Of a stretch of 64,000 nucleotides of DNA, positions 28,650 to 64,000 are shown piece by piece. Origin of the DNA: Schmidtea nova (Eukaryota); assembly GCA_044892505.1 (NCBI GenBank), contig CM097882.1:157480001-157544000 (forward strand), given 5' to 3'. Position 1 is the stretch's first letter. Every line of letters starts with the position of its first letter. Both the position numbers and the translations under genes were made by a program. The notes beneath the pieces are model-generated. The model was not told the origin of the DNA, made no database searches, and worked only from the letters and a program-made list of their open reading frames with translations.

Positions 28650-28930
28650 TCTTCCTATTCTGCAGTCATCATAAATTTTAATTGTGTTGACTATTTTTCC
28701 TGTATTTAACATAGTGTGTAAAATGTTGGCAGAAGAACTATATTGCCAGTATTTCTTTCCTTGTTACACAGTAGCCTTTTTCATGGTTGCTCATTGTATG
28801 AGATTCATAGACAATAACTTGTTCATGTCCAAGGTCATCCTTTTGAGAAAGTATCGCTCCAATTCTATCAAAGTGTCTTTATTCAGAATAAACTCTCTTC
28901 TAAAATCAGGGAAATTAACACCGGTGCCAT
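28650..28930 (-). pseudogene. Gypsy pol relic (RT connection/RNase H)
   Basis: Across frameshifts: LMMAPV / NFPDFRREFILNKDT / GIGAILSQKDDLGHEQVIVYESHTMSNHEKGYCVTRKEILAI*FFCQHF. Confidence 0.8.
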
Positions 28931-30649
28931 CATCAATGCCTTTTTCATTTCTTCGAATGAAATCTGACATGTGTCTGTTCAAATTATTTTTTCATTATCT
29001 TTTCCACACATACTTTCTAATGATCTCGCTTTCTTCACATATTTTTTTATAAATCGTCTGTAATAATTGCATATTCCTAAAAAACTTCTTAGTCTATGAT
29101 CTTCTCTCCCCCACCATCATGAATGATTTTAAATCGTCTTATCAGACTTCTATCACTATAAACTTTCAAAAAATACATCACATAAATAAAAAAATAAAAA
29201 TTGGTTTTGCGACATAAAACACTAAGTCTCCCAGACATATAATTTCAGCATTTTATGTATGATCCAAGGTAATCACCCAAGAATAACTACCAAGACCAAT
29301 GATAATCAAAGAAACCAAGAAAAGAGATAACTAAGGAAAACTCTATAAAATTCCGTACTTGAACCTTGATTGCTAGTGGTAGGGAATATTCCGTCCGCGG
29401 GTTGAACTTACAACTGCCTCTACATGACTAGTCATGTCTCGCTCTTCTTTAAATAATAATTTCTTGCCTTTTTTCTTGCGCTTTTTTCTTGAAAAAAAAT
29501 TATTTTAACTTTAAAATATTTTTTAAAAAGTTTACTTTTTCTAATTTCATATGAAAATTGATAAAACTTAATTTATAATTCTTGGAATCCCTGTTTTTGA
29601 AAAGGAAAAAAATATCAAAAATAATTATAATTCGAAGAATCCCAAAATGTGAAATTATGTAATAAATTGTTCATTCGAAATTGTGATATGGTTTTATATA
29701 GATGTTAGATACAGGGAAGATAGTCGAAAACTTTGAGATAGATGAAAATTATACAATAGGGGCAAATAAGTACAGACTAAATGTGTATGTGGATAACAAC
29801 AATCAGAACCCAGGCCAACAATGATAATAATTTGACTTGATGAACTACATTTGATTGTGATAACATTTTCTTTTACTTTATTGGTTTTGATAATTGATGA
29901 TATTGTTATATGAATAATTGATTTTATTTGTGGATGTATTTTTTTAAATAGATAGACAAGGAAAATATCAAATTCAATGACATTATGATTTTAGTGATTT
30001 TATATGATAATATTTTATGTGATCTGGCAATTTTTATTTTTATGGATAATTTTATTTTATATTGATGATAATTATATTTTATTGTGTAATAATAATTATA
30101 TGGTTTGATAATGGATAATTTCATTTTTCTTTGTTGTTGTGTATATATTTCGACAAACTCACTGCCATCGCCAAATATATCCCGGGTCAGGACCCCCCAT
30201 ACAAATATATATAAATAATTATTTAAATTAAATTAAAATGCCCTCAAGGGGCTAAAATTAAATTAATTTTTGTTTTTAAGACGCTAGGCGTCATTGGATA
30301 AAAGCTAAAAGCACTTCAAGTGCAGCACAAATTTAATTACTGCATGTAATTATGTCATTATTCCAAAGTGTTTTCCACTTTCATTGTTTTATTATGAAAT
30401 ATTTATGGAAAATAAATAATGTTTGAAATATTTCAAGTCATAATACACAATTTTCAAAAATGAGTCGACAAATTTTTTGGGATCTAATTAATAATCCAAT
30501 AAGATCATAATAAATGGTGCCTCATTAATATTCAACAAGACAACGAAATTTAGAAATTTATGAACAAGAAAATATAATCAAACAAAATAATTTGTTTTAA
30601 TTCTAACACATTGAAAGTTTTTAAAAGAGCACTTCAAGTGCTAATATGA

Positions 30650-31715: not shown

Positions 31716-32460
31716 ATGGCAGAGAAAAGAACGAGTGATTCACAGACACATGTTGCTAAACAATCTAGAAAAAGTCTGACGTAGGAGATGAAAACGAATG
31801 TTATTATGTGAATTGAGAACGGTGAACGACAGTTCAAAGTGTCTTCCAGCCTAGAGTTGGCTGGATCAACAATTAGAACCATTCTTAAAAATACCGATAA
31901 CATTAAGAAATCCATTTGTACAACAAATTCATTATCTGCTAAGAAAGTAACACACACAAGAAAGACTCAAGTAGAAGAAATGGAGAAATTATTAACATTC
32001 TGGATGGATGATCAAACACAGAAAAAATTACCGCTCAGCCAGGGCATCATAATGGAAAAAGCAAAGATATTATATTTAGAGCTTATAAATCGAACTGGAG
32101 AAAACTCCATAACGGAGAGTTTTGTTGCAAGCCGAGGCTGGTTTGAAAAGTTTAAACTACGTGCAAATTTACACAAAATTAGTCTTTCCGGAGAATCTGC
32201 CAGTGCTGATAAAGAATCTGCAGAGGTATTTAAGAAGAGTTTGGATGATATTATAAAAGAGAAAAATTATCCTCGGCAGCTTATTTTCAATTTTGATGAG
32301 ACCGGTATTTATTTTGAAGAAAATGCCATCAAAAACATTCATCTCCAAAGAAGAAAAATCCGCATCAGGTTTTAAAGCCGCGAATGATCGTTTAACTTCA
32401 TTATTAAGTGGAAATTCAACTGGAGATTTCAGGATGAAACCGTTACTAATTTACCATTCT
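31716..32460 (+). pseudogene. Tigger/pogo transposase relic (CENP-B HTH plus start of DDE)
   Basis: STIRTILKN, MEKLLTFW, IIMEKAK, FVASRGWFEKFK, GESASAD, IFNFDETG / KKMPSKTFISKEEKSASGFKAANDRLT; ends at a (CA)n(TA)n tract. Confidence 0.88.
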
Positions 32461-33157: not shown

Positions 33158-35357
33158 CACCTGGTTTCAAGCATTAAAAGTAACGGATCAAGTATTTTAT
33201 ACCCAAAAATATTTGATATTAACCCTTTAACTTTATATAATGCATATATGCATTATGGCTAAAAATAATATATAAATAATTTTTCAAATTTCAAATTATA
33301 CTAATCTATACTATTATCTTATACTATTGACACTTGTTTAAGAGTTAATTATAAAAAATTTAATTTAAATTATGAATTTCAAAAAACCCATGCATTTAGA
33401 TACTTTACAGACGATGTTGATTCGAATGACGGAAGAACAACTATTACCCTGGATGTTTTCAAAAGGACTGTATCATTCTGCCTGCATTTGTGACAGTTGT
33501 GGACAGGCTATGCAATTGAAACATTGCAAGGATTACATTGATTGTTATCAGTGGCGGTGTATGGTAACCACATGCCTCAAATACCAAACACCAAAAGTGT
33601 GCGGCAGGGAAGCTTTTTCGAGAATAACCGCCTGCCAAGTCTTACTAACTTGAAAGCTCTGATTCAATGGTCAATAGGAAACACGCAGGTGACTGTATTG
33701 AAAAACGTCAAAATTTCCAAAACCGCGTATTCTACAATGAGGAAAAAGATTACGCGATTGATTGAACACGAATTTCTTACGCATCCAATCAAGCTTGGTG
33801 GACCCTTTTCAGTAGTTCACATCGACGAAACTAAACTTGACTATAATGTCAAAAATCATCGAGGGAGAGGTCCAGGTACCCCTTGCTGGTGTATTTGCAT
33901 CGTGGACACTTCTTTTATCCCCTCACTGGGATATAATTTAATTGTTAAAGATCGTTCTGCCAACACATTGATTCCAATAATCAATGACGTAGTACTACCC
34001 GGATCTACGATTTTTACTGATGAATGGGCTGCTTACAGGTCTTTGGCAAAAGATCCAAACTTTGATTTTGGTACAGTTTGTCACAAATATCTTACCAAAA
34101 GTTATAATGGGAAGTTGAAGTACGCAATCAAAATGATGAAAGGGTTGATTTTAGAAGCGAGGAAATGATTTTTGGTTGATTTTATGTGGAGAGAACGGCA
34201 TACTGAAAATTGTTTTGATGATTTGCTTACGTTAATTAAAGTATGACGAGTTGTTAACATAAATATAATTATTTTTATCTCTTTAATTGCATGCCTTTAA
34301 TCATTACATTTAATTTGTGTTTATTAATTACAATTTAATCAGGGGGTATAAAATACTTGATCCAAAGTAACTATGATACAAGTAGGTGTACACACCTACT
34401 TGTTACTCATAGTTACTTTGTTTAATTCTAATTCATTTAGCCATTTATTTTTCATTTAGCCATTTTTTAAAAATGGCTATCAGGTAATTTTATTTGTCTA
34501 GATATCTTTTATTGCTTCTATTTTGATCTTACAATGATATAAGATTATTATTGAAGCTTTGAAAGTTTATCTTTATTCTTCATTATTATTTTGATTTTAT
34601 GTTTATGTTGAAAATATTTCATTAAACGTAACTAAAAATATTTTTTAACAGCAGTTTATTAATTAAATAAATCAGTATCCGAATATTTCAATTTTCTTGC
34701 AACATTTGAGGAAGAACCTGCGAATATGATCATAATAATTCTTTAAATTTTTGTAATCGTCCTTATTCCAGCTCGTTATCAATGGCTTCTTTGATCAAGA
34801 AAAATCTATCTTGAAAGGACATTGAGCCAAATTAATTTGCTCGAGATATTACCTTTCTTATGCTGAACTTAACTTTGCTGAAGATGCTTTCGATTGGATT
34901 TAAGAAAGGGCTGTATGGTGGCAAATTCACAATAAAATTATTTGGAGATAAGGCTCCTCCGTAAATGGAAGCGTTGTCATGAATGAGGTAAAACCCCGTT
35001 CTATTCAATTTGGATGATATCTCATCAATGAATTCTGATAAGTATTCTTTTTGTAAGAGCCTCAAATTAATTTGTGATGAATTGGCTCTTTTATACCAAT
35101 GGCGAGAACCAATGACATGTTTTCCCCCTGTTTGTTGGAATATTTTGTAATTTTTTACCAAAAAAATTTATTACACTTTTTAATCGCAAAACAAGATGTA
35201 CCCTTAAAAGTTTTCATGTAATTTTCATTGTGTGTTGTGTGTATAATTTATTTTTTCTTACAGAATGTTAAAAATTTTAAACTACGAAATATCAAAATGT
35301 AACATCTACGTAAGTTTTCATTTGCTATTGGTTATTTTTAATTTATATTATAAATAC
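33158..35357 (-). mobile_element. Second copy of the Tc1/IS630-like element, inverted, hosting a Merlin insertion
   Basis: TIR cacctggtttcaagcattaaaa at 33158; reverse complement of 394-1518; DDE fragment 34832-35161; runs into a gap. Confidence 0.88.
33185..34363 (+). mobile_element. Merlin (IS1016/ISXO2-like) transposon with frameshifted transposase
   Basis: 20-bp TIRs ggatcaagtattttataccc; 8-bp TSD aaagtaac (33177-33184, 34364-34371); CxxC...WRC, LGGP..VVHIDET, RSANTL.PII...V.PGSTIFTDEWAAY. Confidence 0.92.
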
Positions 35358-42399: not shown

Positions 42400-44930
42400 C
42401 ATTGGGGATTCTGGATTTTTAGCCGATAGTTCAGATGAGTTTTGTAAATAACGGGGTTGTGAATTCCTATGACATTTCTTGCATGGATATGTTGTACGTT
42501 GTGGTCTGGTGAAACAAATTGAAATAAGTTCGGAGATGTGTGTATGTATGTTTTATAGTACGTTAGAAATGAATGCCCTATTGTTATGATTTTATGTGAT
42601 TGCGTGTGTTTGTATGTTGGGAATGATACTGCGGTAAGAGGCTATAAACAATGGATGGGATTAGATGAATATTTGTGGGGATCGTCTGGATGTATGTTGC
42701 TAGTGGATATTGTTAAATGAAACTACGTTGTGTATGTTGGTGAGTGGATGTATTGTTTATGGTATTATTTAGCATAGAAGCTCCTATTGATTGAAATGTG
42801 GTAGTGTGTGTGTATGTGTTGGTAACTGAATGTATTTTTGTATTGTATTAGGTATGAGTGTTACTAATGAATGAAATGGATGTAAATTTTTGCAATTAGG
42901 GATGCATTATGATTTTGTGATATCGTGGGGGTACTTTATAAAATAATATATATTTATATATAAAATATTTTCAGTATTAAAATAATAATAATAATTTTTA
43001 TAATAATTTTTACAAATTTTAAATAAAATTTCTAATTTTTAAAATATACATTTTTGAATTCAAATTTTTAAATTTCAAGATTTAATATATTAATCGTAAA
43101 TTTTTTCTATGAAATTTCGAATTTGGAATTTTATAAAATGATAAAAAAAATTTATATAATAACAATATTTTCGATTTGTAATTTTCATGGGTTTCAATAT
43201 AATTTTTGATTTACTAATTCTTAGGAAAACTTTTGGTTTACAATTTCTCATTATAAATTTTTCGCAATATAATAAAAAGTAAAATTTTATTTTTTATGAT
43301 CTATAACGAAATCTACACAATAATAAATTTTTATCCAAAAATTTCGTAATCCAAATAAGAATTCAATCTAAAAATTTTTATATACTAAATAAAAATAAAA
43401 GTAAAATAAATTATAAATTCTTCAAAGAATAATTTTTGACATCGAGTAAAGTGAATTTTGGTTTCGTTCGAGCATGAATTTCGCAACCAAAGTGCGCCCA
43501 AATTTTTCGGGACACTTCACTTAGAAACTTCAGGCTCCCGTAAACAAGGTTCACTGGAGAAAATTATTTAGATAATGAATGAGGTTTAATTCAGATCAAT
43601 CAATACTTGTCTTCATAATTCGTTTCATTTCGTGATCATTATATCAGCTCTGAGCATTATTTCAACGATTCTCTTTTCAATATTAGCTTTCTATTCTACT
43701 TGTGTTTTTCGGATAAGATGGTAATTGTTGTGAGAGTGAAGGCGAATGACGTGTAAAATATTCTTGTACAGATAAATTATATAATGAAAAAGACATTGCT
43801 GGATGAATTGACATTTACGTTTTTATGTAGTATTATGTTTTAAGTGCTCATTATGTTAAAAAATTATAATTCCAATAAAATACACTAGTATAAATTATAG
43901 ATCATTAATATAATACCTTGCCCTTGGTCAAGCCACTGTTCCCCAGTTGGGTTGAAGTGATCATGGATGTTTGGGCGTATCACCTGAACTCGGAAATATG
44001 GGCTGATCGATTACGAATCGAACCAGTGATCCACTCAGGCTACTTCCACCCGCTCGGCACAAGGCCAGAAACAGGTTTCAGGGGGTATGGAAGAAAAAAG
44101 AATTATTACTTTTATCTTGGTACAATAATTATTATTATAAAATAAATTTTTATTCCATCTGGGAATTTATGACATGATTAAATTTAAATAATGAAAAACA
44201 AAGAAAAACAACTTTCATTTAATATTTTGGATAATAATTAAAATTGATGATGATAATATAAGAATAATAATCAATAATATAAAATTAACAATAATAAAAT
44301 AATACTGGGTACGGGGTAATTGAAGGAGCATGATGTTCAATGACCCCGCACCGATCAAAAGAATGATACTTACAAATTTTTCTGGAAAATTCGAGTTCTT
44401 CAAAATTAAAATTTAAAAAATTTCTTTCATCAAATTCTCACAAATTCTGATTATTGCCATTTTGATGGCGGTATATATACCATCGATTGTGTGTTACCTT
44501 CACTAGTGCAGTAAAACAAATTGTTCTAGAATGTTCTTTTTAGTTTTTCTAAATTAATTCTAATGATTTTCCGCCGAATTAAATCAATATTTTTACGTAA
44601 TAATTTTTTATAAACTATAATTGATTTATTTTAATCCAAAATATTTATTTTTGAATCAGAATTTATTCAATTTGGTTTAATTTGCTATATTTCGATCAAA
44701 ATTAGTTCTTTTTATCTTTAATGTGAAATTTAATGGTAAAATCACAATTTTCTTCTAAAATTTTGTTAATTTTGTCTGCACTGAAGTTTTATGACACAAT
44801 TCTGTTCTTTATGGGTATTTTCAATGGGTTTTCCGCCTATTCTAACTTTCAAACATTCTTCTTTTGACAACTTTTAATTTTTCTCAAGGTTTCAGTGTAA
44901 GGACTTGCAGATTCACAGCTAGCGCTGTCG
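42400..44930 (-). mobile_element. LTR copy B (lacks the terminal ~170 bp; left boundary uncertain)
   Basis: 42850-44930 aligns with 49270-51450 and 1570-4100. Confidence 0.75.
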
Positions 44931-49837: not shown

Positions 49838-51620
49838 AAAAAATTTTTCCTATAGAATTTTGAAATTTTGGATTTTTTAAAATGATAAAATTTTCAATAT
49901 AATAATAATATTTTCGATTTAAAATTTTTATTGGTTTCAATATAAGTTTTGATTTATAAATTCTTAGGAATTTTATAAAATGACAAAATCTTTTATATCA
50001 TAACAATATTCGGAGAATTTTTGGTTCACAATTTTTCATTATAAAAATTTTTCCAATATAATAAAAAGTAAATTTTTATTTTTTGATCGAAACGAAATCC
50101 ACATCATAATAAATTTTTCATCCATAGATTTCGAAATCTAAATAAGCATTTAATCTAAAAAATTTTTATATGCTAAATAAAAATAAAATAAAAATAAGTT
50201 ATAAATTTTTCAACGAATATTTTTCGACATCGAATAAAGTTAATTTCGGTTTCATTATTATTCCATCGGATTTGAGCATTAATTCGAACGATTTACTTTT
50301 TAATATCGGTTTTTAATATCCTGGATCTTGGATGAGAAGAAAATTATTGTGAAGGTGAAGGCGAAGGACGAGTAAAATGTTTTTGCATAATTATTTTTCC
50401 TAATGGAAAAGATGTTGCTGGAGAGATTGGTTTTTACGTTTACATGTGGTATTAATTTTCAATATATCAAAAATTATAAATTCGGATAAACTACATTTAT
50501 TATAAATTAATATCATTAATATAATTTCTTGCCTTGGGCCAAGCCACTGTTCCCCAGTTGGGATGAAGTGATCATGGATGGTTAGGCTATTCACCTGAAC
50601 TCGGAAAAATGGACTGATCGATTTACGTATCGAACCAGCGATCCGCTCAGGCTACTTCCACCCGATCGGCACAAGGCCAGACACAGGCTTCAGGGGGTAT
50701 GGAAAAAAAAATTTATTTAGTTACTTTTATCATTTTTTAAGATAATATTGTGGATTTAACTCTCTGAGATTTTGTGACAAACAAAAAAAAATTATAAGTA
50801 AATATTTTAATATTCATTCGATAAAAATAGCATAACAATAATAATATAAAATTATAAAAATATTACCGGTACGGGGTAATCGAACAGGCATGGTGTTCGA
50901 TGACCCCGCGCCAACAAAAGAATAGGACTTACGAATAAATTAAAATTTATAAGTTTTCTTGAATAAAATTTCACAAAATTCTGATAAATTCCATTTTGAT
51001 GGCGGTATATATACCATCGATTTTGCGTTACCTTCAGTAGTGTAATAAAACAAATTGTTCTAGAATTTTCCATTTAATTTTTCTAAATTAATTCTAATGA
51101 TTTTCCGAAAATTAAATCCATATTTTTGTGTAATAATTTTTTACAAAACACAAATAATTTATTTTAATTCCAAATTTTTGTTTTTGAATCGAAATTTGTT
51201 CGATTTGATTTAATTTACGATATTTCGATTAATTTTAGTTCTTTTTATTGTTAATGTGAAATATTTTGATAAAATCACAATTTTCGGCTAAAATTTTTGT
51301 TAATTTTTTCTGCATGAAGGTTTTTATAACACAATTCCGTTTTTTGGGTATTTTCAATGGGTTTTGCGCCTATTCTAACTTTTAAACGTTCTTCTTTTGA
51401 TGGTATTTGATTTTTCTCGAGGTTTCAATGTAAGGGCTTTCAGACTCACAGCTAGCGCGTTCTCTACTGGTTGATGTGTTGTGAGTCCACTTCACCTTTT
51501 GTTGTTTTTCACTTAATTGCTTGGATTTTTAATGGATTTTTGGGTTAAAACTGAATCTTGCGCGCTCTCTACCTATGGGGTTATCGTTTTATTAAAACAG
51601 TTTGTGGTTTTTGCCCAACA
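48790..51620 (-). mobile_element. 3' LTR (copy C) of the giant Gypsy element; left boundary uncertain (~48300-48790)
   Basis: Begins TGTTGGG on minus at 51620, ~1.2 kb downstream of the polyprotein end; homologous to copies A and B. Confidence 0.8.
50998..51018. promoter_or_regulatory. Palindromic TATA element in the LTR
   Basis: gatggcggTATATATAccatc, conserved at 44464-44484 and (TATATAAA) at 3646-3666. Confidence 0.5.
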
Positions 51621-52844
51621 TAAAATACTCGGGGGCCCGCAAAAATTGCGTCCCGCAATTTCTCAGAGGGGTTAAGAACCAAGACTAATCAAAGGTCAAA
51701 AGGTTGTACATTATACACGAGCTACTTGGTCGTGATCATGCCGTTCGCGACAATAAAAATAAAAAGTGATAAAATTTAATAAAAAGTTAATATGTATACA
51801 TTAATATGAGTCTACATAGACTCGCAAGCAAAAAAAAAATTAAATATAATGTAATATATGTGCCTACAGCGGCTAATCAAAGTTCAATATGAGTCTACAA
51901 CGACTCGGATAAAAGTTTTATAAAATTCAGTTAAATTGTTTATATTCTGGTACTTGACGAATAGTATTGTATTGGTTGTTCTATTGTAAATTGAGGATTT
52001 GTTTCTCGTTTTCTGGGTCGTCTTGGGGATTGTTCCGCTTTGGTTGACATAGTTGATAATTCATTGGATAATAGCACGGAGCGAGTATAAGGTGATTGAA
52101 TATGCTCCGTAATTTTCTCAGTTCGGTCTTGATTTGGATCATATAATTCGGGTTTTCGGATGTGACCGCTCGTAGTTCATCATTTGACTTTGTCCATTCT
52201 TTCATAGATTATCTGATCTCGATTCATTGGACGATTTATTAAGGTAATTGTTCTGGAATTTGATTGATCGTAGGTGTGGATTTTGATTCTTGCTTCAAAG
52301 GTTTGATTTTTCTCTTGATTGGAGCTTTGTTTTAAGATTTTGCTGGCTCCCTTTTCGCATTATTGCTTTTAATTGTTTCTTTCAAATTTTTCTTGATTTA
52401 ACTTAGGTTTCTGCTTCACTTTTCTGGTTTGGATTGTTTTGATTTCATTGACTTTCTGATTTGTCTGGTCTTGATGTTTGATAATTTTTGTTGATGTTCG
52501 GTCTTTTTATTCTCTATTTTTTCTGATTTACTCAAATATTTTTCTGGCTCTCCGATTAATTCATTTTTTAATGGTAACTTTTCTGCGAACAAGCTTGACT
52601 TTGACTTTAAATGATCTCTTTAATTTAATTCGACCAGTTTTTTTTTTTTTTTTTTTTATAATACAAATAATCATACTTTTATTATAATATATTTTGTACA
52701 TTATTTACACTTCATTTTGTTTATTACACCAACGTCTTTAAGATACACACATTTTTTTGATTTTTGGTGTTTTTCATTATACAATTTTCTCATACTTTTA
52801 CGATACTATATATTTTGTACATTATTTACACTTTGTTTCGTTTG

Positions 52845-53471
52845 TTATACCAACGTCTCCTGAGGGCCGAAATATAGGTTTCGCATTCCCCCATACAATT
52901 CATTTGTAGTTCGATATATATCTGCTTCTATTATTGACGGATTTATCGTTGGTGGTAGTCCTTGCATCCACATTCCATTGAATTCTGATCCATTGCATAT
53001 CTCATATTCGTCTTCCGTCTTTACTTCTTCTAAACTGATTCCATATTCAAACTTCTCGATGCTTGGCCATTGTCTCTTTCTTTTCGGTTTTCTTTTACAT
53101 CTTCCAGTGATTTTTGCATGTTGTGTGAGAATCAAAACCAATATTGTGCCTATTATTCCGGCAGTTATCCATATCATTTTGATTGCTATTTTTGATTCTT
53201 CTACTGCTGCTGATATTGTTGTTGGAGATTCCGTTGTTGTTTGTACGATTTTGATCGGTCTCCCTCCTTGAATTATTCGTTCGGCTTCTTCCTCCGATAT
53301 ATATTTATTATAAACTGTTGATTTTGTTGTTAGTATTTGATCTTCTGTACTGAATTTTCTGGTATCGTCTACTCGTCTAGGTAATTTTGAAATAAATTGA
53401 CATGTTGGATGTTCATTTAATTTTTTGTAGAGGCATACCCGGTATTTAGTTCCTCGTTCCCATCCGGCTAC
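52845..53471 (-). CDS. Frameshifted continuation of the polyprotein: end of FN3-like repeat 4, Thr-rich stalk, TM helix and cytoplasmic tail
   Basis: The -1 frame is open from ~53495: VAGWERGTKYRVCLYKK...TTTESPTTISAAVEE...MIWITAGIIGTILVLILTQ-HAKITGRCKRKPKRKR... Confidence 0.8.
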   Translation of the reverse strand, partial: VAGWERGTKYRVCLYKKLNEHPTCQFISKLPRRVDDTRKFSTEDQILTTKSTVYNKYISEEEAERIIQGGRPIKIVQTTTESPTTISAAVEESKIAIKMIWITAGIIGTILVLILTQHAKITGRCKRKPKRKRQWPSIEKFEYGISLEEVKTEDEYEICNGSEFNGMWMQGLPPTINPSIIEADIYRTTNELYGGMRNLYFGPQETLV

Positions 53472-54770
53472 ATAATAATAAATGATTTTTCTTCTTTATT
53501 GCTCACACTTTTACACTTTTCTTGTTGTAGTTTTACTTCATAAATGCATATTCTAGCAATAAGATGTCCTTGTACGTTTTTGACTTTTATAATATCATTT
53601 TGAAAGAATTTTTCGGTTTCTTTTTGTATTCGGTTTGGAGTGATTGATATTGATATTTCTTTTCTGTAACCTTTGACTATCGTTGGTTTCTCTGTTACAG
53701 TTATTGTTGCTCTTGGGAGTCTTATTGCTTTTTCAACCGGTTCTCTCCCGCTTTCTGTGCTTGTTATTATTTGTTCTGTTGTGGTGTGTTCTTGACAAAT
53801 TGGGACTAACGTTCTCCATATGCATATTAGATACGTTGTCTTTGATTCTAACTCTTTGATTATCATTTGTTCCTTTCCCTTTACTGACTGTTGATAGCAT
53901 TTGCTAGGGTTGTCAAGCCCACTATTCATATCGACCTTTCTCCAACAAACCTTTTTGATTACTTCGTCATGGTTGTTTATTAGTATTATTTCCGTGGATT
54001 TCGTTTCTACTATCAGAGGGTAATAAGTAGTTGTTCCATTGGTTGTTGTAGTTGTCGTTATGATTTCCTTGGTGAGTTTTTCTAGACATAGTTTTTGTGT
54101 CCATATTCTTCTTATGCATATCGTGTAGCTTGTTCCTGGCTTCAATCCTGGTATTCTGAATTTTCCAATTTGGCCTGTCATTTGAAATTTACACGATAAT
54201 TGTCTGTCTTTATTTTGCATATGGATGGTTTTTATCCAACAAATTTGAGTTATAGGCTCTATCACCTTGTTTGTTATCATCATCTCTTTTTCTTTCACTT
54301 CTATTGTTGTTTTGTTCTGGATCGTCATCATAATCTTTTTATCTTGCTCTTCTTCTTCGTTTTCTTCTTCATTTTCATCTGTTGAGGTTTTTGTGACACT
54401 TTGTATTTTTTCTAGCTTGTTCCTCTCGTTTCCCATTTTCGTAATCTTTTCTTTAGCTGCACAGATTGCTCTTATTTGATTTGTCCGATATACACATATT
54501 ATATACGTTGTTCCTGATTCGAGTTTTTCGATCTTTTGCTCTTCTCCTATTGCTAATGCTGTTCTTATGCATTTCTGGTGATCACTGACTCCATTTTTCC
54601 GTATTGCAACTGTACATATTTTAATTATTAGCTCTCCTTTGATATTCGTTATCCATATATTTTCTGTATCTGTAACTATTCTCGCCTCTGCTCTCCTCTG
54701 ATCAAATATGTAATCAATTGCTTTCACCCAATTCAACATTGTCAATAATATTGTCATAATTATTGTATTT
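53400..54770 (-). other. Second signal-like segment plus four FN3-like repeats
   Basis: NTIIMTILLTMLNWVKA; repeats LESGTTYIICVY, LKPGTSYTICIR, LESKTTYLICIW, WERGTKYRVCLY. Confidence 0.75.
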
Positions 54771-57700
54771 TTACCTGGATTTTTAAGTAGACATACCGTT
54801 CGATTTTCATAGTTGGAATTTTCTTGTCCATTCTTGTTCTCTTTATTTTCGTCTTCGTTTTCGTTGTTTTTATTCTCCCATTTGTCACTGTTTCTGTGAT
54901 TTCCGTGATCGCTGTTATTATCATTTAGCTGCTGTTCATTGCTATCGTTGTCTTTATCGTCTGATTTGCCGTCATCGGGATCGTTCAGATCACCCTCGGT
55001 TTCTTTTAAAATGTCGTCCTCGACATTTATATCTTTGATTATTTCCCAATATAATTTGATAATTCTTTGTTCATCTAATTTTATTTCACCCATTTTGCAT
55101 TTCAATGTTCCAGCATCGTCGTGAAGATAACTCTTGTCTTTATTTTTGATCTTTTTTCGCCATTCTTTAACCAATTCAAGTAGTTTTTCTCTCTTTGTTT
55201 TTATTTTCATTTCTTCGTTTGGCTTGTTTGTGAATCTGAAGTCTGATCTTTTTAGTAGTGCTTTTGCTACTCTAGGTAATGTCCAATTTTCAATCAAAGC
55301 TCGCTCCATTAACACGTTTTTATCATTTTTGAACTCGTTGTTCACATTCATCAGTCCTTCTCCAGAGAGTGGATCTTTCCATTTTATCATTTTTGTAGCT
55401 ACTATTTCGTCTTTTCTCATTACTGCTCTTAATAATGGCTTTGGATTTAAACTCAGGATTTTAATGTCCTCTTGACTTGCTTTTGATAAAAGGTACTTGG
55501 CTATTGTATAATAAGGTGATCTGTAAACGTATGATAGTACAGTTTCATTGTTGTTATCCCTTTCTTTGATACTTGACCCTGTTCTTAGTAACTCCTCGAT
55601 TAAGTCTTTGGACCCTCCTTCTTCTACTGCTAGCATTAATGGTGTTTGTCCTTTCCAATTTTTTATATTCGAGTGTTGTCCACATCTTTCCATGAGTTTA
55701 ATTATTTCCATAGCTCTTTTTCCTTCTCCCTTCCTCAAGGCTACATTTAGTGGTGTTTTCTCATTGAAATCAGTCATTGTAAATAATATTGGCATTCGCT
55801 CCTTGATTATATTAATAACTTTTGGTGTTGCCTTTCCTCTGGCATAATCATCTATTATCCGATTTAGTCCGTTTATTATTTCGAATACGTGTTTGCCTTC
55901 TGTCCATTCCGGCATAATCTCTTTTGCTGTTTCTATTATCAGATCCATTTCTTTTATATGTTCGATTCTCGCATCATCCGTTATTTCTTGCTTAATTTGT
56001 AATGTTGGACTTCTCATCTTTGGTGCAAAGAATGTTGTGTCTCCAAAACATCCACATCCTTTACTCTTTCTAAGCATGCATATTTGTCTTGTCTGTGATC
56101 TGGTCATTATTCTCCTTTCCTCTGGTTCTTTTGTCGCAGTTTTTTCTACTCGTTTACATCTACACACATTCACGTATATCGGTCGAACTAACGGATTGTT
56201 GACTAATTTTACCCGGATATTATTTTTGCTAACAAATATGACTTCATATGGTCCTTTTCCCGTTCTCTGTAATTTTTTCGCTGTTCCTGGGATGATTTCT
56301 GGTGTTTCGACTATCACCCAATCGCCTAGCTTGAACTGATGTTCATGTACATTTCTCTTTTTGTCGTGTAGTTCTTTGTAACTCTCTTGATTGAATCGTA
56401 TATTCATACCTGCAACTTTCCAAATTTCTTGCATTCGCTCCTTGAATTTTGTTACGTAATCATCGATTTCCATATATTGTGATATTGGTGGTTGATATTC
56501 AAGATCCATTGGCATGTTGCATTCTCTGCCGTACATCAATTTAAACGGACTCATTTTTGTTGCCGAGTGAATCGACATACGGTATGCCATTAGACATAGA
56601 TTCACATATTCATCCCAATCCTTTTGGTGTTTACTGACATAATTTGACATCATCTCAATCAATATTCCGTTAAATCTCTCCGTTTGTCCATTTGTTTGGG
56701 GATGATATGGTGAAGTTCTCAACTTAGCTATTCTGAAATAATTGGTAACTTCGTTGATGATCTCGCTCATAAAATTTGTTCCTTGATCGGTTAAAATTTG
56801 TTTTGGTGTTCCATATCTACAACATATTTCTTCGACTAATATTTTGGCTATTGTTCTAGCTTTCTGATCTGGCATTGCAAATGCTTCTGGAAATTTTGTT
56901 AAGTAATCAGTTATTACTAATATATAAACATTTCCATGATTTGTTTCTGGTAAGGGTCCTACTACATCCATTGCGATCATTGTCATAGGTTCTGGTGGAA
57001 TTGGCATTGGTTTTAAAGGTGTTTTCATTTTACTGCCAGTGCTTTTTCGCGTTGCACATATTAGACAATTCCTAATCCATTCTTTCACGTCTTCCCCAAT
57101 ATTTGGCCAAAAATATTTCTGTTTTAATCTCGCTTCCGTTTTCTTAGCTGACATATGTCCACCAAGTTTTCCATCGTGGTATTGCATCAGGATGTCTTTC
57201 CTTCTACTTTCTGGTAAACACATGAGTCTTTTTTCTCCGTCCATTGCTAATAACCAGCCTTTTTCAATTGTATATTTGTGCCTGTTTTTCTCCATATGCT
57301 CCTTTAGTTGGCTGTTATGCTCAAAGATTTTCATATCATTCTTATTCAAATATTCGATGATTAGTTTTAGCTCTTCATCTTCATTTTGTTCCTGTTGCAG
57401 TTTAGTGAAATCAATATCTTCTGCGATTATCATACATATTCGCCTGACATCTTTGTCCATTAGTTCTTCAAACATAAATCTTGACATACAATCCGCATTT
57501 GCGTTCGCTTTCCCTGACTTTAACTTTATATATGGCGAATATTCTTGTAGCTGCATTGCCCATCTCATCAATCTGCTTGACGCTTCTTTATGCTGGCCTA
57601 ACCATACTAACGGTTGATGATCTGTTGTGATGTATATTTCGTGACCCCACAATAGATATTTGAAATGTTTAATCGCCTGAATGATTGCTAGCGCTTCTCT

Positions 57701-60700
57701 TTCCGTTACTGAGTAATTCTTCTCGTGTTTTCGAAAGGTTTTGCTGTAGTATCCTATCACTCTTTCTCTCCCATCTTCATCCCATTGTCCTAGTACGGCT
57801 CCTGACGCATATCCACTTGCGTCGGTTGCTAATAGAAATGGTTTTTTGAAGTCTGGGTGTACTAATATTGGCGATGAAATTAATTTGTCTCGCAATGCTT
57901 CGAATGCATTTTGTTGTTCTCTTCCCCAGATAAATGGTGTATCTTTTTTGACTAGCTCTTGTACAGGCTTTGCAATTCCCGCGTAGTTTTTAATAAATTT
58001 CCGATAATAACCGCATAGTCCTAAAAATTCTTGTATTTGGGTTATGGTTTTCGGTATTGGACAATTTTTTATCTTTTCGATATTTCTTGGGTCCGGCTCT
58101 TTTCCTTTAGCTGATACAATGTGACCCAAAAAGGTAACTTTTGGTTTTGCCCAATCACATTTTGAGGGTTTTAATTTTAATTTCCATTGCCTTAATCGGA
58201 TAAATACGTTTTGGATATCTTGTAAATGTTGATCGAATGTACCCGAGTAAATCAATAAATCATCAATATATACCATATATTGTTTTATCCCGTGAGTTAC
58301 AAAATTCATACATCTTTGGAATGATGCAGGTGCATTAGTTAAACCAAATGGCATCTTTTTGAACTGGTACAGATCTTTTCCGATGGTAAACGCTGTTTTC
58401 TCTCTGTCCTCTTCTTTCACTTTGATCTGCCAGTAACCGCTTTTCAAATCTAATGACGTGAAGTATGCTGCACCATGTAATGTTTGTAACATTTCGTTGA
58501 TATCTGGTAACGGGTATGTATCCCTCTTGGTTACTGCGTTCAATTGTCGATAATCAATACAAAATCGTTGGGTACCATCTTTCTTTTTTACCATTACTAC
58601 TGGAAATTGCCATGGTGAACAACTTGGTTCAATCACATCTGCGTCTAACATCTTTTGCACTTCGGCTTCGGCCACTGCTTCCTGCGCCTCCGCTAGTCGA
58701 TATGGTCTCAATGTGATCGGTGTTTCGTCTGTTAGGGGAATAGTATGTTGAGTTACATCACTCGTTCCCAAGTCTAAATCAGATGCTGCAAAGATGTCTT
58801 TAAATTCTAACAATACTGTTTTTAGTTGTTCTTTTTCAGTATCGTTTAAAATTTCACTGTCGATTACCCATAACTCTTCCACTTTACTCTCATCCTCTTG
58901 AATTTTAGGTAGTTCAATATTCAACATCGGGGTTAATTTTCCCAATCTCTCGTTTTCGTAGATGATTTTGTCTTCCTCGTCGAAATTGGTGATGTTGATT
59001 GGTATTTCGTTTTCTTTGTTGACGTTCACTATTTCTCTTGCCAATGGTAACTCTTTTCTCATCTCAAAATTTTGATTTGGTTCAAATATCATTTCACCGA
59101 CTGCCGTGTCTTTCACTTTGGTGAAACATATCATTTGCGTTCTTCCTGGTACGACAATTTTCTTTGAACACCTTACTTCCGTTTTCATTGAACAGATTTG
59201 TCCGCTTTTATCTTTCAACCTCATCGTACTCAAATCGATAACAATCTCCTTTAGTAATTCTGGCATTAAGTCTGTCCCAATGATACATGAGGCACCCAAT
59301 TGTTTTATTACAGCTAAGTAAGTAGACATCTCTACATCTTTATACTTAATATCTGACCATATTTTCCCAATAACTTTGACGGATTCTTTATTGCACGTGA
59401 CCACATCCATTGGTGCTTCTTCAATGCAAGGCCATAACATGCCTGGTATCATATTCATGTTTATTGCTGATATATTTGCACCGGTATCTATCATTGCATC
59501 CATTTCAACACCGTTGATTTCAATGGCAATAGTAAGGGTTGGTCCAGCGGATGTTCTCATCATGGCTATTGTCATTGTTTCTAGATTTTTCTCTTCGCTT
59601 TGTGGTCTGTTTAGTATTGTTGGGTCTGGTCTGTTTAGTATTGCTGGGTCAATCATTGCCCAATTTGGTTCGTAATGTGCTGGGTAGAAATTTGGCATTG
59701 GTAACATTCGTAGTCCAGCTCGTGTTTTTTCTCTCACTGTTCCTGGTCTTTGTGGGTTAGGGTATGTCATTGGTGGAAGATTTTGACCTTCCCATTGTTT
59801 TGATTTTTCTGCTTCCCATATTGGTGCGGTACCATTTGATCCGGAGTTCGCTCCTCCTTGATTTCCTTTATCATCGTTATCACTATCGTCATCATCCGAG
59901 TCTTTCCTTCGGTTATCCCACCATCTTTTCCATCCACTACGTCTGGTTTCTTTGTATTTCGTTCTCTCTGCTTCGTTTTTCATAATGAATCTAAATTTTC
60001 TACCGATCTCTTCGTCGGTTCCTTTCATCTTGGTCAGTATTCCAATTAACCTCTTTATTCTATGAATGTCTTTTGAATGCCCATGCAATACCATAGTTTT
60101 AGCCAAAAATGGTAGGAATCCAAGTGCCATTTTCCAATTGATTTGTCTCTCTCTTTTATAGATATCAAAACAAGCTAGCATCTGAGTTATAATAACTCTG
60201 ACTATTTGAATAATTAGGATTATCCCTAATATTCCTGCCATCATCTGTCCAAATACTAAGAATTTTCCCCACATAGCTTTCATCATATTATTGGTTGCGT
60301 GTTTGAAATGTTCTGGTGACAACAATAACTCGTAATTCGGACTTCCCACGAAATTTGTTCCACCGGTTATGGCTATAATATTTGATAGTACTGCTTGTCT
60401 TTGGGTTGGAAATAGTATGTGCTTTCTCGCTGCTTCTAAATCTGCATCTCTGTACACTCCACTGTGTGAAATATCTATGGGTTTAAATTCTATTTCTGTT
60501 GTTAACTCTGTTAATCCAAATCGTTTAGGTGCTGATACAATTTGCCGATTTGGAAATACTACCCATTTTCCATTTCCCATGTCATACATTGGTCCATACG
60601 CATTACTACAATTGAACTGATGGGGTTCGTAATTTGGTGGATTTATTATTCTCGTTACTGCTTGTACAAATCGACTTCTTCCTTTATAGAATATTTCCAA

Positions 60701-63700
60701 TTCGTTAGTACATCGGTTTTCTGGTATTCTTGGTCTTTCCGGTAGTCTTGCTATCTCTTTTTTACATTTGTATGTATACATAACTTCTCCCACAATTCGA
60801 CCAAAATGTCCTTCTTGCAGTGGTAATAATGGTATTGCGTTATCTGGATTCGTTATAGCCATTGCTAATTTGGTTCTCAAGATTTCTATGTTCAATAGAC
60901 AATCGTTTTGTATCAAATCGTGATATACTTTCTCTGTGGTTGCCATACCTCTATGGTATAAGAAATCCATTTTATTATTTGCGTACAAATACGTTTTAAT
61001 GTCCACTTTATCTGGTTTTGGTGCTGCTTCAGCTATCACTGTTGTAGATAGGAAAATTCCTTTGTAATTCGTTTTTATTACTAGTCTTCCGCATTTACTG
61101 ACGGTTTCACCTTTGATAAATCTCATTCCCACTCCTGGATCTTTCGATATAATTGCTGTTGGTGTATTTACTAATTTAAGTCTTTCGGTTGTCTCTTTAT
61201 GCTGGAATGTTCTTGTTCTCTTGAGCTGTTCCATTTCTTGTCTGGTTGAATCATCTTTGGGTTCGTCATAAACTTTTCCTAGTATTTCCTCGAATTCAGC
61301 TTCTTGTAATAACATTAGTCGACATTTATTCGCATCTGCCTTATAAATCAATGTTGATGCACCGGTATTACACGAGGTATGTTCTGCAGAACAACTTGGG
61401 AATTTTCTCATTGATAGCGTGTCTGGATCAAAATATCCCGGATATGTTTCTAATTTCACTTGATACATTTCTATTACCACTACATTGCTGACCACTTTTC
61501 CAAATAGCGTGTATGCTCCTCCTGTACAGCTTCCGTCTGGTTTATTGACGTATCCAGCTGCATAAACTCTTGTTATTTTAATTGCTCCTGGTTGGGCAGC
61601 TACGATTATGTTTCCTGCTAACGATATCCGTTTTGAGGTAAATGCTTCATTGCACTTTTCGCTATCCAGTGATATTACGGTTGATTCCATTCCTGGTTCG
61701 ATAATTGTTGAATATGAATATTGTCCACAGTAATACGCAAATAACTTTCTCGTAACCGTGCATTCTCTTATTTCTGCTTTGATGAGGTCTGATTCCTGAT
61801 ACACGTTGTAACTTATTTTATTCACAATTCGTTCCAACTTTTTCGGCGTGGCTTGTTTACAATCTTCCGTATCTTTTAATGAATATTTCTCGCTAAGCTC
61901 GATTTTGTCACAATCGTATACCACAAACGCTGTTGCTCCCTTTATGCACATCATCCAAATTAATATTGTGGTCAATATCGCATTCATACTCTTCCCATAT
62001 GTTCTTTGATCGCGAAAATTCATTGATCCTTCGAATTCTGTTAATAATTCTCTCAACTTTACTTGCATGGTTTCCGTTTGATCTATTTTATCTACTGAGT
62101 TGATGAATATTTTCCAACCTCCTTGTTTCATTATATACGGCTCTATCAGTTTCTCAATGATTTCTGTTATAGTGAATATGTGACCATTGGGATTATATCT
62201 GGGTGTTCTTCGCTTGTACAAGACGATCATATTGTACATTAGATATGCCAAGCTTACTAAATATTTTGCTGGTTCGTTCGTGTTTTTTGTCAGTTTTTCG
62301 ATAATTTCTTTCATTTCTGCAGGATTTCTCAACGTCATTCGTACTTTTCCTTCGATGATTTTTGAGATTATTGATTTAATCGTTATCCATAGTTGTTTAG
62401 CTTCTTGTTGGATATGATCTCTTTTTAGCGCCCTTTTTATTTCTGGGTTTGCCAATGCAAGCATATCAGATACTAATTCATTTATCCATCGGATTCCTTG
62501 TTCGGTTATTGGTGTATTACCTTTCACTTGATTTGCAACTGTCACTAGTTTGCTTACTTTTAGTTGTAATTGTTCCGTCTTGCTTACTGATGTTGGTTTT
62601 TGATTTCTTTCTGTTTGATCTTTCGCCGGCCTCCCTCTTGGGCGTTTATCTATCATCGTTCCAGCTTCTCGTCTACTTGGCTGATTATTCGCGATTTCTC
62701 TAGATGTTGTTGCTCCTCTATCTGTGATCCAATTAATCCATTCTTCAGTTGTAGAATTTTCTCTTGCTCGTTTTTGTACTTTTTCTCGGTCAGTTTCATC
62801 ATCGGTTGCTGTGATTTTTTGCCGTTTTACCCAAGGAATTCTCTGGTCATCGGTTGTTGTTTCATTTTCTATATTTGAGAATAAATCCCCTGAGTAAAAT
62901 GCTGTTTCGTCGTTTTCTCTATTCGCAATATTTGTCAGTTCTTCTAATACGTCTTCATCAGTTGTTTCGACAATAATTTCACTTGCAGCTTCCGGTATTT
63001 CTGATTCGTCTAAATTTCCGAACAATTTTCTCATCTGAGTTCGATTTCCCTCTTTTCTGATTAGTTCATTGCCTGCAATTTTATAAACAGTTAAATGATT
63101 ACTTGTTCCGATTCGTATCGGGGTTACACCAATTTCTATCTCATCATCGAGTGATCTTCCTTCGTACTGTAGATGAAATGGTAATTCAAATGGCAGTTTC
63201 TTTTTAATCTCTTTCATTTTCATGGTTGCTAATACTTCCAGCTCTTCCTTTCCAAAGTCTGGAAAATGGATTTTTAATCCACATTTTTGCGGTTCGTCAC
63301 TTTCCCATTCCATTTGCCTCCATTTTCTTCTAAGCTCATCGAATTGTTCTGGATACCAAGTGTATACCCGTCCATATTCCTCGATTTCCTTCATGAGCAT
63401 TGTCATGGTTAATCTATCCTTGCCGTTCTCGAGAATCCATTTTGCTAATTCGACTACCGCTCTTCGTTGATTTTTGGCACCTTTTTCTAGAATATCGATT
63501 AACTGTCTACTTTTTTGGGCTTCAGTTCTCTCTAATACCTCAGGGTCCGTCAGTTCATCCATATCTACAGGACGTAATCTCGAGGTTGTTTCTTGTTTTC
63601 TCAGCACGCTGATTCTGGGAATTGTCAACTTTTCCCTTACGTCTTCCTCAATTTTGCATGAAACGTAAATATCTCCTTCACTTTGATATCGAGATTTTTT

Positions 63701-64000
63701 ATCTAATAGCAAGTGTTGCAAGATAAATTTTGGTGCTCCTGATGCTATATTTTCCTCTTTTCCTGGTTTATGATAGCAGCTGCTGAGCTTTTCTGGATAA
63801 ATTTCTTCACTATGACCCTTCTCTGAATTGTAGGATGATCCTATAGACAATGTTACTTTTTGATCTAACGGCCATGTTAATTCCTCGTCATTGATCCCTT
63901 TACAGATGATATAAAATAATGACGTATGGGTTCCTTTACCAACTCCATCTCCGTTTGGATAAATTCTCATTTTTAGTTTATATCCACCTGGGTAAGTGTA
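53468..64000 (-). CDS. Giant Ty3/Gypsy polyprotein (>3500 aa, 5'-incomplete): MATH - Bcl-2-like - Env - PR - RT - RH - IN - ANK - FN3-like
   Basis: Open from base 64000 (YTYPGGYKLKMRIYP...). DTGA protease (~59488), RT with YIDD (~58270), RNase H ATDASG...TDH, integrase HHCC plus D-D-E plus GPY; order PR-RT-RH-IN. Confidence 0.95.
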   Translation of the reverse strand, partial: YTYPGGYKLKMRIYPNGDGVGKGTHTSLFYIICKGINDEELTWPLDQKVTLSIGSSYNSEKGHSEEIYPEKLSSCYHKPGKEENIASGAPKFILQHLLLDKKSRYQSEGDIYVSCKIEEDVREKLTIPRISVLRKQETTSRLRPVDMDELTDPEVLERTEAQKSRQLIDILEKGAKNQRRAVVELAKWILENGKDRLTMTMLMKEIEEYGRVYTWYPEQFDELRRKWRQMEWESDEPQKCGLKIHFPDFGKEELEVLATMKMKEIKKKLPFELPFHLQYEGRSLDDEIEIGVTPIRIGTSNHLTVYKIAGNELIRKEGNRTQMRKLFGNLDESEIPEAASEIIVETTDEDVLEELTNIANRENDETAFYSGDLFSNIENETTTDDQRIPWVKRQKITATDDETDREKVQKRARENSTTEEWINWITDRGATTSREIANNQPSRREAGTMIDKRPRGRPAKDQTERNQKPTSVSKTEQLQLKVSKLVTVANQVKGNTPITEQGIRWINELVSDMLALANPEIKRALKRDHIQQEAKQLWITIKSIISKIIEGKVRMTLRNPAEMKEIIEKLTKNTNEPAKYLVSLAYLMYNMIVLYKRRTPRYNPNGHIFTITEIIEKLIEPYIMKQGGWKIFINSVDKIDQTETMQVKLRELLTEFEGSMNFRDQRTYGKSMNAILTTILIWMMCIKGATAFVVYDCDKIELSEKYSLKDTEDCKQATPKKLERIVNKISYNVYQESDLIKAEIRECTVTRKLFAYYCGQYSYSTIIEPGMESTVISLDSEKCNEAFTSKRISLAGNIIVAAQPGAIKITRVYAAGYVNKPDGSCTGGAYTLFGKVVSNVVVIEMYQVKLETYPGYFDPDTLSMRKFPSCSAEHTSCNTGASTLIYKADANKCRLMLLQEAEFEEILGKVYDEPKDDSTRQEMEQLKRTRTFQHKETTERLKLVNTPTAIISKDPGVGMRFIKGETVSKCGRLVIKTNYKGIFLSTTVIAEAAPKPDKVDIKTYLYANNKMDFLYHRGMATTEKVYHDLIQNDCLLNIEILRTKLAMAITNPDNAIPLLPLQEGHFGRIVGEVMYTYKCKKEIARLPERPRIPENRCTNELEIFYKGRSRFVQAVTRIINPPNYEPHQFNCSNAYGPMYDMGNGKWVVFPNRQIVSAPKRFGLTELTTEIEFKPIDISHSGVYRDADLEAARKHILFPTQRQAVLSNIIAITGGTNFVGSPNYELLLSPEHFKHATNNMMKAMWGKFLVFGQMMAGILGIILIIQIVRVIITQMLACFDIYKRERQINWKMALGFLPFLAKTMVLHGHSKDIHRIKRLIGILTKMKGTDEEIGRKFRFIMKNEAERTKYKETRRSGWKRWWDNRRKDSDDDDSDNDDKGNQGGANSGSNGTAPIWEAEKSKQWEGQNLPPMTYPNPQRPGTVREKTRAGLRMLPMPNFYPAHYEPNWAMIDPAILNRPDPTILNRPQSEEKNLETMTIAMMRTSAGPTLTIAIEINGVEMDAMIDTGANISAINMNMIPGMLWPCIEEAPMDVVTCNKESVKVIGKIWSDIKYKDVEMSTYLAVIKQLGASCIIGTDLMPELLKEIVIDLSTMRLKDKSGQICSMKTEVRCSKKIVVPGRTQMICFTKVKDTAVGEMIFEPNQNFEMRKELPLAREIVNVNKENEIPINITNFDEEDKIIYENERLGKLTPMLNIELPKIQEDESKVEELWVIDSEILNDTEKEQLKTVLLEFKDIFAASDLDLGTSDVTQHTIPLTDETPITLRPYRLAEAQEAVAEAEVQKMLDADVIEPSCSPWQFPVVMVKKKDGTQRFCIDYRQLNAVTKRDTYPLPDINEMLQTLHGAAYFTSLDLKSGYWQIKVKEEDREKTAFTIGKDLYQFKKMPFGLTNAPASFQRCMNFVTHGIKQYMVYIDDLLIYSGTFDQHLQDIQNVFIRLRQWKLKLKPSKCDWAKPKVTFLGHIVSAKGKEPDPRNIEKIKNCPIPKTITQIQEFLGLCGYYRKFIKNYAGIAKPVQELVKKDTPFIWGREQQNAFEALRDKLISSPILVHPDFKKPFLLATDASGYASGAVLGQWDEDGRERVIGYYSKTFRKHEKNYSVTEREALAIIQAIKHFKYLLWGHEIYITTDHQPLVWLGQHKEASSRLMRWAMQLQEYSPYIKLKSGKANANADCMSRFMFEELMDKDVRRICMIIAEDIDFTKLQQEQNEDEELKLIIEYLNKNDMKIFEHNSQLKEHMEKNRHKYTIEKGWLLAMDGEKRLMCLPESRRKDILMQYHDGKLGGHMSAKKTEARLKQKYFWPNIGEDVKEWIRNCLICATRKSTGSKMKTPLKPMPIPPEPMTMIAMDVVGPLPETNHGNVYILVITDYLTKFPEAFAMPDQKARTIAKILVEEICCRYGTPKQILTDQGTNFMSEIINEVTNYFRIAKLRTSPYHPQTNGQTERFNGILIEMMSNYVSKHQKDWDEYVNLCLMAYRMSIHSATKMSPFKLMYGRECNMPMDLEYQPPISQYMEIDDYVTKFKERMQEIWKVAGMNIRFNQESYKELHDKKRNVHEHQFKLGDWVIVETPEIIPGTAKKLQRTGKGPYEVIFVSKNNIRVKLVNNPLVRPIYVNVCRCKRVEKTATKEPEERRIMTRSQTRQICMLRKSKGCGCFGDTTFFAPKMRSPTLQIKQEITDDARIEHIKEMDLIIETAKEIMPEWTEGKHVFEIINGLNRIIDDYARGKATPKVINIIKERMPILFTMTDFNEKTPLNVALRKGEGKRAMEIIKLMERCGQHSNIKNWKGQTPLMLAVEEGGSKDLIEELLRTGSSIKERDNNNETVLSYVYRSPYYTIAKYLLSKASQEDIKILSLNPKPLLRAVMRKDEIVATKMIKWKDPLSGEGLMNVNNEFKNDKNVLMERALIENWTLPRVAKALLKRSDFRFTNKPNEEMKIKTKREKLLELVKEWRKKIKNKDKSYLHDDAGTLKCKMGEIKLDEQRIIKLYWEIIKDINVEDDILKETEGDLNDPDDGKSDDKDNDSNEQQLNDNNSDHGNHRNSDKWENKNNENEDENKENKNGQENSNYENRTVCLLKNPGKNTIIMTILLTMLNWVKAIDYIFDQRRAEARIVTDTENIWITNIKGELIIKICTVAIRKNGVSDHQKCIRTALAIGEEQKIEKLESGTTYIICVYRTNQIRAICAAKEKITKMGNERNKLEKIQSVTKTSTDENEEENEEEEQDKKIMMTIQNKTTIEVKEKEMMITNKVIEPITQICWIKTIHMQNKDRQLSCKFQMTGQIGKFRIPGLKPGTSYTICIRRIWTQKLCLEKLTKEIITTTTTTNGTTTYYPLIVETKSTEIILINNHDEVIKKVCWRKVDMNSGLDNPSKCYQQSVKGKEQMIIKELESKTTYLICIWRTLVPICQEHTTTEQIITSTESGREPVEKAIRLPRATITVTEKPTIVKGYRKEISISITPNRIQKETEKFFQNDIIKVKNVQGHLIARICIYEVKLQQEKCKSVSNKEEKSFIIM
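55480..55790 (-). other. Ankyrin repeats downstream of integrase
   Basis: EKTPLNVA, GQTPLMLAVEEG..DLIEELLRTGSSIKERDNNNETVLSY. Confidence 0.85.
60100..61987 (-). other. Signal peptide plus class III-like envelope glycoprotein with C-terminal TM
   Basis: MNAILTTILIWMMCIKGATA|FVVYDC...YSL.D...C...YQ...ECTV...YYCG.YS Cys pattern of chuvirus-G/gB-like proteins; TM FLVFGQMMAGILGIILIIQIVRVII. Confidence 0.75.
62090..62580 (-). other. Bcl-2-like helical domain within the polyprotein
   Basis: LIEPYIMKQGGWKIFI matches BH2 (Bcl-xL HLEPWIQENGGWDTFV); preceded by amphipathic helices; no NWGR. Confidence 0.6.
63647..64000 (-). other. TRAF-type MATH domain within the polyprotein
   Basis: GYKLKMRIYPNGDGVGKGTHTSLF...WP..QKVTL...KP..EENIASGAPKF. 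Confidence 0.9.

Follow-up and report, generated by a model that had tools for sequence, protein, structure and literature searches.

The interval 52845–54770 of a 64,000-nucleotide stretch of Schmidtea nova DNA (GenBank assembly GCA_044892505.1, contig CM097882.1, positions 157,480,001 to 157,544,000 of the forward strand; the whole stretch is called the window below) reads as the last, broken 3′ module of one giant env-carrying Ty3/gypsy-like retroelement polyprotein gene. We consider it probable, at roughly 0.6, that this module encodes a second, adhesion-molecule-like surface glycoprotein of the element, with a PDZ-binding tail, which is split by one frameshift in the present copy. A first-pass annotation of the interval had described a type I membrane module with FN3-like (fibronectin type III-like) repeats divided by a frameshift, a description that agrees with the topology signals and the FN3-like fold reported here. 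It missed that the module, to judge by its sequence, is the 3′ end of a retroelement polyprotein and not a stand-alone gene, and that the conserved feature of its tail is a putative C-terminal PDZ-binding motif.

A minus-strand reading frame, over 3,500 codons long, extends past the right edge of the window and reaches down into the flagged interval, all features of the flagged module lying on this strand and inside these coordinates. Along this one frame Pfam places, in order, MATH, class III fusion glycoprotein, protease, reverse transcriptase (RT), RNase H, integrase (IN) and ankyrin domains. The polyprotein gene (52845–64000, minus strand, like every feature of the element given below) has its 5′ end beyond the window edge and is interrupted by a single frameshift; over the more than 10.5 kb that lie inside the window it is otherwise unbroken. 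The first domain visible is a MATH/TRAF-like domain, truncated N-terminally at the window edge (63650–64000; PF22486, E 6.6e-14; PF21355, E 1.2e-13), the frame staying open to the end of the window. Behind it lies a class III viral fusion glycoprotein (60155–62053; PF24664, E 6.8e-69; 33–40% identity to relatives) with a signal-like segment (amino acids 665–683) and a membrane helix (amino acids 1243–1261) of its own. Next come an aspartic protease (59255–59536), a reverse transcriptase (58115–58591; PF00078, E 2.8e-36), RNase H (57539–57928), an integrase with H2C2 zinc finger and core (56699–57214) and ankyrin repeats (55478–55708; Ank_2, E 4.5e-15 for this piece alone), all assigned with Pfam. 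The protease–RT–RNase H–IN order is that of Ty3/gypsy-type pol, and the fusion glycoprotein stands upstream of it in an ENV-before-POL layout. The best identity to any database protein was 52%. As far as the window shows, the polyprotein begins with the MATH/TRAF-like domain, which retroelements do not usually carry on their gag side; neither a gag family nor a CCHC zinc knuckle was found by Pfam or motif scan in the window's protein, whose N-terminus the window edge cuts. Within the 64-kb window neither the element nor its 3′ flank was found a second time.

Behind the ankyrin repeats the polyprotein continues into a module of about 650 amino acids. An acidic, Asn-rich low-complexity linker (54803–55018; amino acids ~2985–3056 of the open reading frame, ORF) leads to an internal signal-peptide-like hydrophobic segment with a cleavage context of the V-x-A type (54719–54775; amino acids ~3066–3084) and then to three FN3-like repeats delimited by repeat alignment (repeat 1, 54446–54688; repeat 2, 54071–54340; repeat 3, 53786–54025), each of about 85 amino acids with four cysteines at constant spacing and the motif L..(G/K)T.Y.IC. 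Linker, signal-like segment and three repeats are thus present in the long ORF as first described. The single frameshift falls in a fourth repeat (53376–53659; repeat alignment and open frame): the main-frame ORF terminates about two thirds of the way through the repeat unit, and the last third, including G-T-x-Y-x-x-C, is read from a different frame (alignment A1). This downstream frame is open for 216 codons, whereas not one of 20,000 shuffled versions of its bases was free of stops, and the other two frames contain 9 and 17 stops over the same stretch. It encodes a Thr/Ser-rich stalk (53193–53252), a membrane helix (53115–53177; 19-mer, Kyte–Doolittle hydropathy 2.31) and a basic stop-transfer run of K/R residues with a cytoplasmic tail (52848–53114; 89 residues), which holds five Tyr and one PP dipeptide and ends in ETLV (52848–52859) directly before the stop codon. 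Alignment A1 and the 216 open codons uphold the earlier observation that the ORF stops in mid-repeat 4 and that another frame finishes the repeat and runs on through stalk, transmembrane (TM) helix, stop-transfer and tail. Tyrosine makes up 5.5% of the tail versus 3.3% of the remaining protein.

The last codons of the gene are taken in by a tandem duplication of ~110–120 bp (52636–52858; 80–90% identical), which also includes 3′ untranslated sequence and is followed by an A21 run; duplication and run together may represent the junction of the 3′ untranslated region and the long terminal repeat (LTR). An A-rich strand bias persists beyond the A21 run to about 51.9 kb.

At the level of fold, the model obtained for repeat 2 supports assignment of the repeats as FN3-like. 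With the window's own repeats as input alignment, AlphaFold2 predicted seven strands (predicted local distance difference test, pLDDT, 78.9; predicted template modelling score 0.68), and the best 50 Foldseek matches of this model in the PDB were all FN3 domains (template modelling score 0.5–0.62), which describes a seven-strand beta-sandwich of FN3 topology and agrees with the FN3-like label given in the first-pass annotation. A profile of the repeats found fibronectin among PDB sequences (E 7e-4), as well as the FNIII domains of Tie2 and titin. A viral structure library returned only generic FN3/Ig matches, and the isolated repeat reached only 15.8 bits against Pfam fn3. The two frame pieces were searched separately, and the tail piece had no match in Pfam. 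An alignment-free AlphaFold2 run on the 441-amino-acid module gave a pLDDT of 32 and was discarded.

Relatives of the element were sought using the RT–IN part and the fusion glycoprotein as queries, yielding 15 metagenomic polyproteins of 2,387–4,057 amino acids. All share the fusogen–protease–RT–RNase H–IN order, with 48–52% identity in RT–IN and 33–40% in the fusogen. In 12 of the 15, a signal, an ectodomain, a TM segment, basic residues and a tail follow the integrase within the ORF of pol. The first-pass annotation had named loss of the downstream frame in other copies as evidence against its view of the break; on the protein level, the module stands in the frame of pol in these 12 relatives. 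Their ectodomains comprise 110–390 residues and are Cys-rich and rich in N-glycosylation sites in most cases, many have a Ser/Thr-rich stretch, and a strong membrane helix precedes a tail of 27–122 residues. The ectodomains align among groups of relatives. The ectodomain of one sequence, P0122, which breaks off inside the anchor, gives weak immunoglobulin-family matches (Ig_3, E 1.5e-5); in another, P0105, a signal-like segment and an ectodomain are present and the anchor-like segment is weaker, under the threshold used; in P0083 no module was seen after the integrase. Taken together, the relatives indicate that the module architecture is a feature of the clade, encoded in one frame. Ankyrin repeats also occur in some relatives, and zf-CCHC or Retrotrans_gag in some. 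P0087 carries a ubiquitin-like domain and has its ankyrin repeats upstream of the protease, while in P0103, which has ankyrin repeats too, a second aspartic protease domain immediately precedes the C-terminal membrane module; from these layouts, accessory domains appear to shift position within the clade. P0110, a eukaryotic retroelement polyprotein, bears the source label of a Flavobacteriaceae metagenome-assembled genome, probably a binning error.

A feature that the tails share lies at their very end. A free C-terminus of the form [ST]-x-hydrophobic is the class I PDZ-binding pattern, and the ETLV of the window's module, with its position directly before the stop codon, is a putative motif of this class. 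An [ST]-x-[VIL] C-terminus is present in 7 of 13 complete tails (the window's and 6 of the 12 from relatives), whereas shuffled tails gave a mean of 0.33 such ends and reached 7 in 0 of 2,000 shuffles; the tails are kin to each other, and these motif counts are not independent events. The terminal residue is V in 10 of the 13. Of the 13 tails, 8 contain a PP dipeptide, a count matched in only 2 of 2,000 shuffles, and PPxY is found in the tails of two relatives. The first-pass annotation had drawn attention to the Tyr motifs. The five Tyr are indeed there, but YxxPhi-type motifs are not above chance (11 of 13 tails versus 8.6 in shuffles), and the individual Tyr motifs of the window's tail are not common to the relatives.

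Hydropathy places four hydrophobic segments along the polyprotein that alternate as signal, anchor, signal and anchor, and for this reason we propose a topology with two glycoproteins: a single polyprotein would give rise to two membrane proteins of alternating topology, the class III fusogen upstream and the adhesion-like protein downstream of pol. The internal signal peptide would restart translocation behind the cytosolic protease–RT–RNase H–IN–ankyrin part and would be cleaved, and the chain that follows it would be a type I glycoprotein with four disulfide-braced FN3-like domains and the Thr-rich stalk outside, one helix in the membrane and a cytoplasmic tail of ~90 residues. The fusogen and FN3 ectodomains would then be luminal, and the N-terminal part, pol, the ankyrin repeats and the tail cytosolic. 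Displayed on the cell surface or the virion, the second glycoprotein may aid attachment or cell-to-cell contact beside the fusogen, and host PDZ scaffold proteins may bind its tail and direct it to a specific membrane domain.

Several observations weigh against a second glycoprotein of this kind. The evidence comes from one copy of the element, itself broken. Repeat 2 stays just below the Pfam cut-off for fn3 (PF00041, E 4.5e-5; 24.0 bits versus 25), and the Foldseek E-values of its model are only about 1e-3. The signal-like segment of the window's module lies below a hydropathy of 1.6, whereas relatives have stronger segments at the same place. Comparison of the window's module with those of the relatives by BLAST, phmmer and hmmsearch, the last with a hidden Markov model of the three intact repeats, gave scores no better than shuffles, and the case for a common descent of the module is one of position, architecture and short motifs. 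Counts of an FN3 F-strand-like motif, L...[TS].Y.Phi, are in favour (12 in 4,084 module residues versus 7 in 37,489 upstream residues), but this motif was chosen only after the sequences had been inspected, and its enrichment serves as supporting evidence only. The kinship of the tails noted above belongs in the same balance. A word search turned up no long protein that shares the window's module, and HMMER against 1.84 billion representatives returned one marginal bacterial CarboxypepD_reg repeat protein (E 3e-4), which carries a generic 'GL.PGTYT' beta-sandwich motif and was rejected as a relative.

The closest competitor to a particle component is a captured host adhesion or junction protein that would modulate the host, through adhesion, polarity signalling or a block to re-infection. 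We rate this as unlikely, although it has points in its favour, as the architecture fits that of FN3/Ig adhesion molecules whose tail carries a PDZ-binding motif, and the wide variation of ectodomains among relatives, one with Ig-like matches, fits repeated capture or fast evolution. The searches nevertheless gave the window's module no host-like homologue, and its position and terminal motif are kept over divergent relatives, a pattern that points to a single old acquisition. The captured-protein account and that of a second glycoprotein overlap, and sequence alone does not separate them.

Improbable by comparison is the function suggested in the first-pass annotation, that of a cytokine-receptor-like decoy or a signalling receptor acting through phosphorylated tail tyrosines. 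Type I membrane topology, FN3-like domains, paired Cys and five tail Tyr would suit such a receptor, but W[ST]xW[ST] is absent from both frame pieces, the first 35 residues of the tail contain no PxP or PxxP box (Box1), no receptor family was matched in Pfam at E up to 10 or among PDB sequences, and HMMER over the 1.84 billion representatives produced only the bacterial beta-sandwich repeat protein already mentioned. The behaviour of the Tyr motifs described above, at chance level as YxxPhi and individually not common to the relatives, likewise speaks against it. The module shares with class I cytokine receptors the type I topology and FN3-type domains with paired Cys, and differs from them in lacking WSxWS, Box1 and any family profile match; we do not retain the receptor assignment.

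The frame break itself is either a private mutation of the present copy or an assembly error, since module and pol share one ORF in 12 of the 15 relatives. Its position in the middle of a domain, together with the single frame of the relatives, gives it the look of a lesion or an assembly error and not of a designed feature, in line with the cause proposed in the first-pass annotation. Programmed ribosomal frameshifting, which would give anchor and tail to only some of the polyproteins, is common among retroelements and would suit the one-base offset between the two frames; it is very improbable here, because the change sits within a folded domain rather than between domains and because the relatives use a single frame. 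Least credible of all is a protein that really stops with the long ORF, the frame beyond it being open by chance or consisting of decayed non-coding sequence: only a single copy is at hand and sequence searches gave the tail piece no homologue, but none of the 20,000 shuffles remained open over 216 codons, and the frame completes the repeat motif and provides TM helix, basic stretch, tail and [ST]-x-V end just as in the relatives.

The DNA of the window is AT-rich, eukaryotic and crowded with fragments of other mobile elements, and an Rfam scan of the window gave no match. An ORF at 10034–12004 (minus strand) combines a reverse transcriptase with a GIY-YIG nuclease domain and represents a Penelope-like retroelement, while a Ty3/gypsy-type RT/RNase H fragment at 28714–29095 (minus strand), 34–49% identical to the element's own, belongs to a different, decayed element. 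Pieces of a dispersed repeat family, 72–95% identical, lie directly downstream of the element (50000–51620) and at 43221–44925 and 2177–4257. DNA transposon fragments are represented by a hAT dimerisation domain, a Tc5/pogo helix–turn–helix domain and an IS1595-like DDE transposase (together at 17853–18374, 31839–32375 and 33542–34168, plus strand). The only clear piece of a host gene noticed was an exon-like ORF at 21365–21931 (minus strand) for the catalytic subunit of a PP1-type serine/threonine phosphatase (Metallophos, E 4.7e-31).

FN3/Ig-superfamily adhesion and junction proteins combine a signal peptide, tandem beta-sandwiches, a stalk, a single TM helix and a short tail with [ST]-x-V at its end. 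The window's module has the same layout, but no sequence relationship to these proteins was found, and it differs from them in having four Cys per FN3-like domain, in being encoded by a retroelement and in its fusion to pol. The rabies virus glycoprotein, a type I protein, carries a class I PDZ-binding motif at the end of its cytoplasmic tail; the PDZ-type motif of the element is located on an accessory FN3 protein instead of the fusogen. Among retroelements, env-carrying Ty3/gypsy elements of GAG-ENV-POL order, errantivirus-like, have been described from Nematoda, Bryozoa and Platyhelminthes (eLife 2026, PMC13524379), the nematode cases being those of Sacco et al. (2022), as cited in that paper. 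The present element resembles them in the class III fusogen ahead of protease–RT–RNase H–IN, in the Ty3/gypsy pol order and in the invertebrate-like genomic setting, and differs in the one reading frame for everything inside the window, its MATH N-terminus and the ankyrin repeats and second membrane glycoprotein placed after the integrase. The text of that study (PMC13524379) makes no mention of ankyrin, fibronectin, PDZ, a second envelope, a C-terminal extension or anything 'downstream of POL'. LTR retrotransposons of bdelloid rotifers possess an extra ORF3 for poorly conserved transmembrane proteins downstream of pol (PMC5408684), but these are small separate ORFs of about 210–230 amino acids without FN3, unlike the in-frame module of ~650 amino acids found here alongside a full fusogen. 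Our literature searches recovered no description of a post-integrase ankyrin and FN3 membrane module with a PDZ-binding end, nor of a retroelement membrane protein with FN3 or a PDZ motif. The type of element is known, and the post-integrase FN3 module with its PDZ-binding end was not found described in the searched literature.

For annotation, roughly 1.9 kb beyond the ankyrin repeats are to be treated as coding, and the terminal short ORF is not a separate gene. The succession of fusogen, pol, ankyrin repeats, signal peptide, FN3/Ig domains, membrane helix and [ST]-x-V end offers a signature with which to find further members of the clade. In a wider and more doubtful view, which we put forward tentatively and think likelier wrong than right, the elements of the clade encode all their proteins in a single polyprotein with four membrane crossings, and a fusogen from negative-strand RNA viruses and an FN3/Ig adhesion-like protein would form an attachment-plus-fusion apparatus targeted to polarised cell contacts; if true, this two-part apparatus would be one so far undescribed for LTR retroelements. 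Env-before-pol Ty3/gypsy elements have so far been described as gag, env and pol only, and a conserved second glycoprotein behind the integrase, if real, would add an unrecognised component to their machinery of cell-to-cell transmission.
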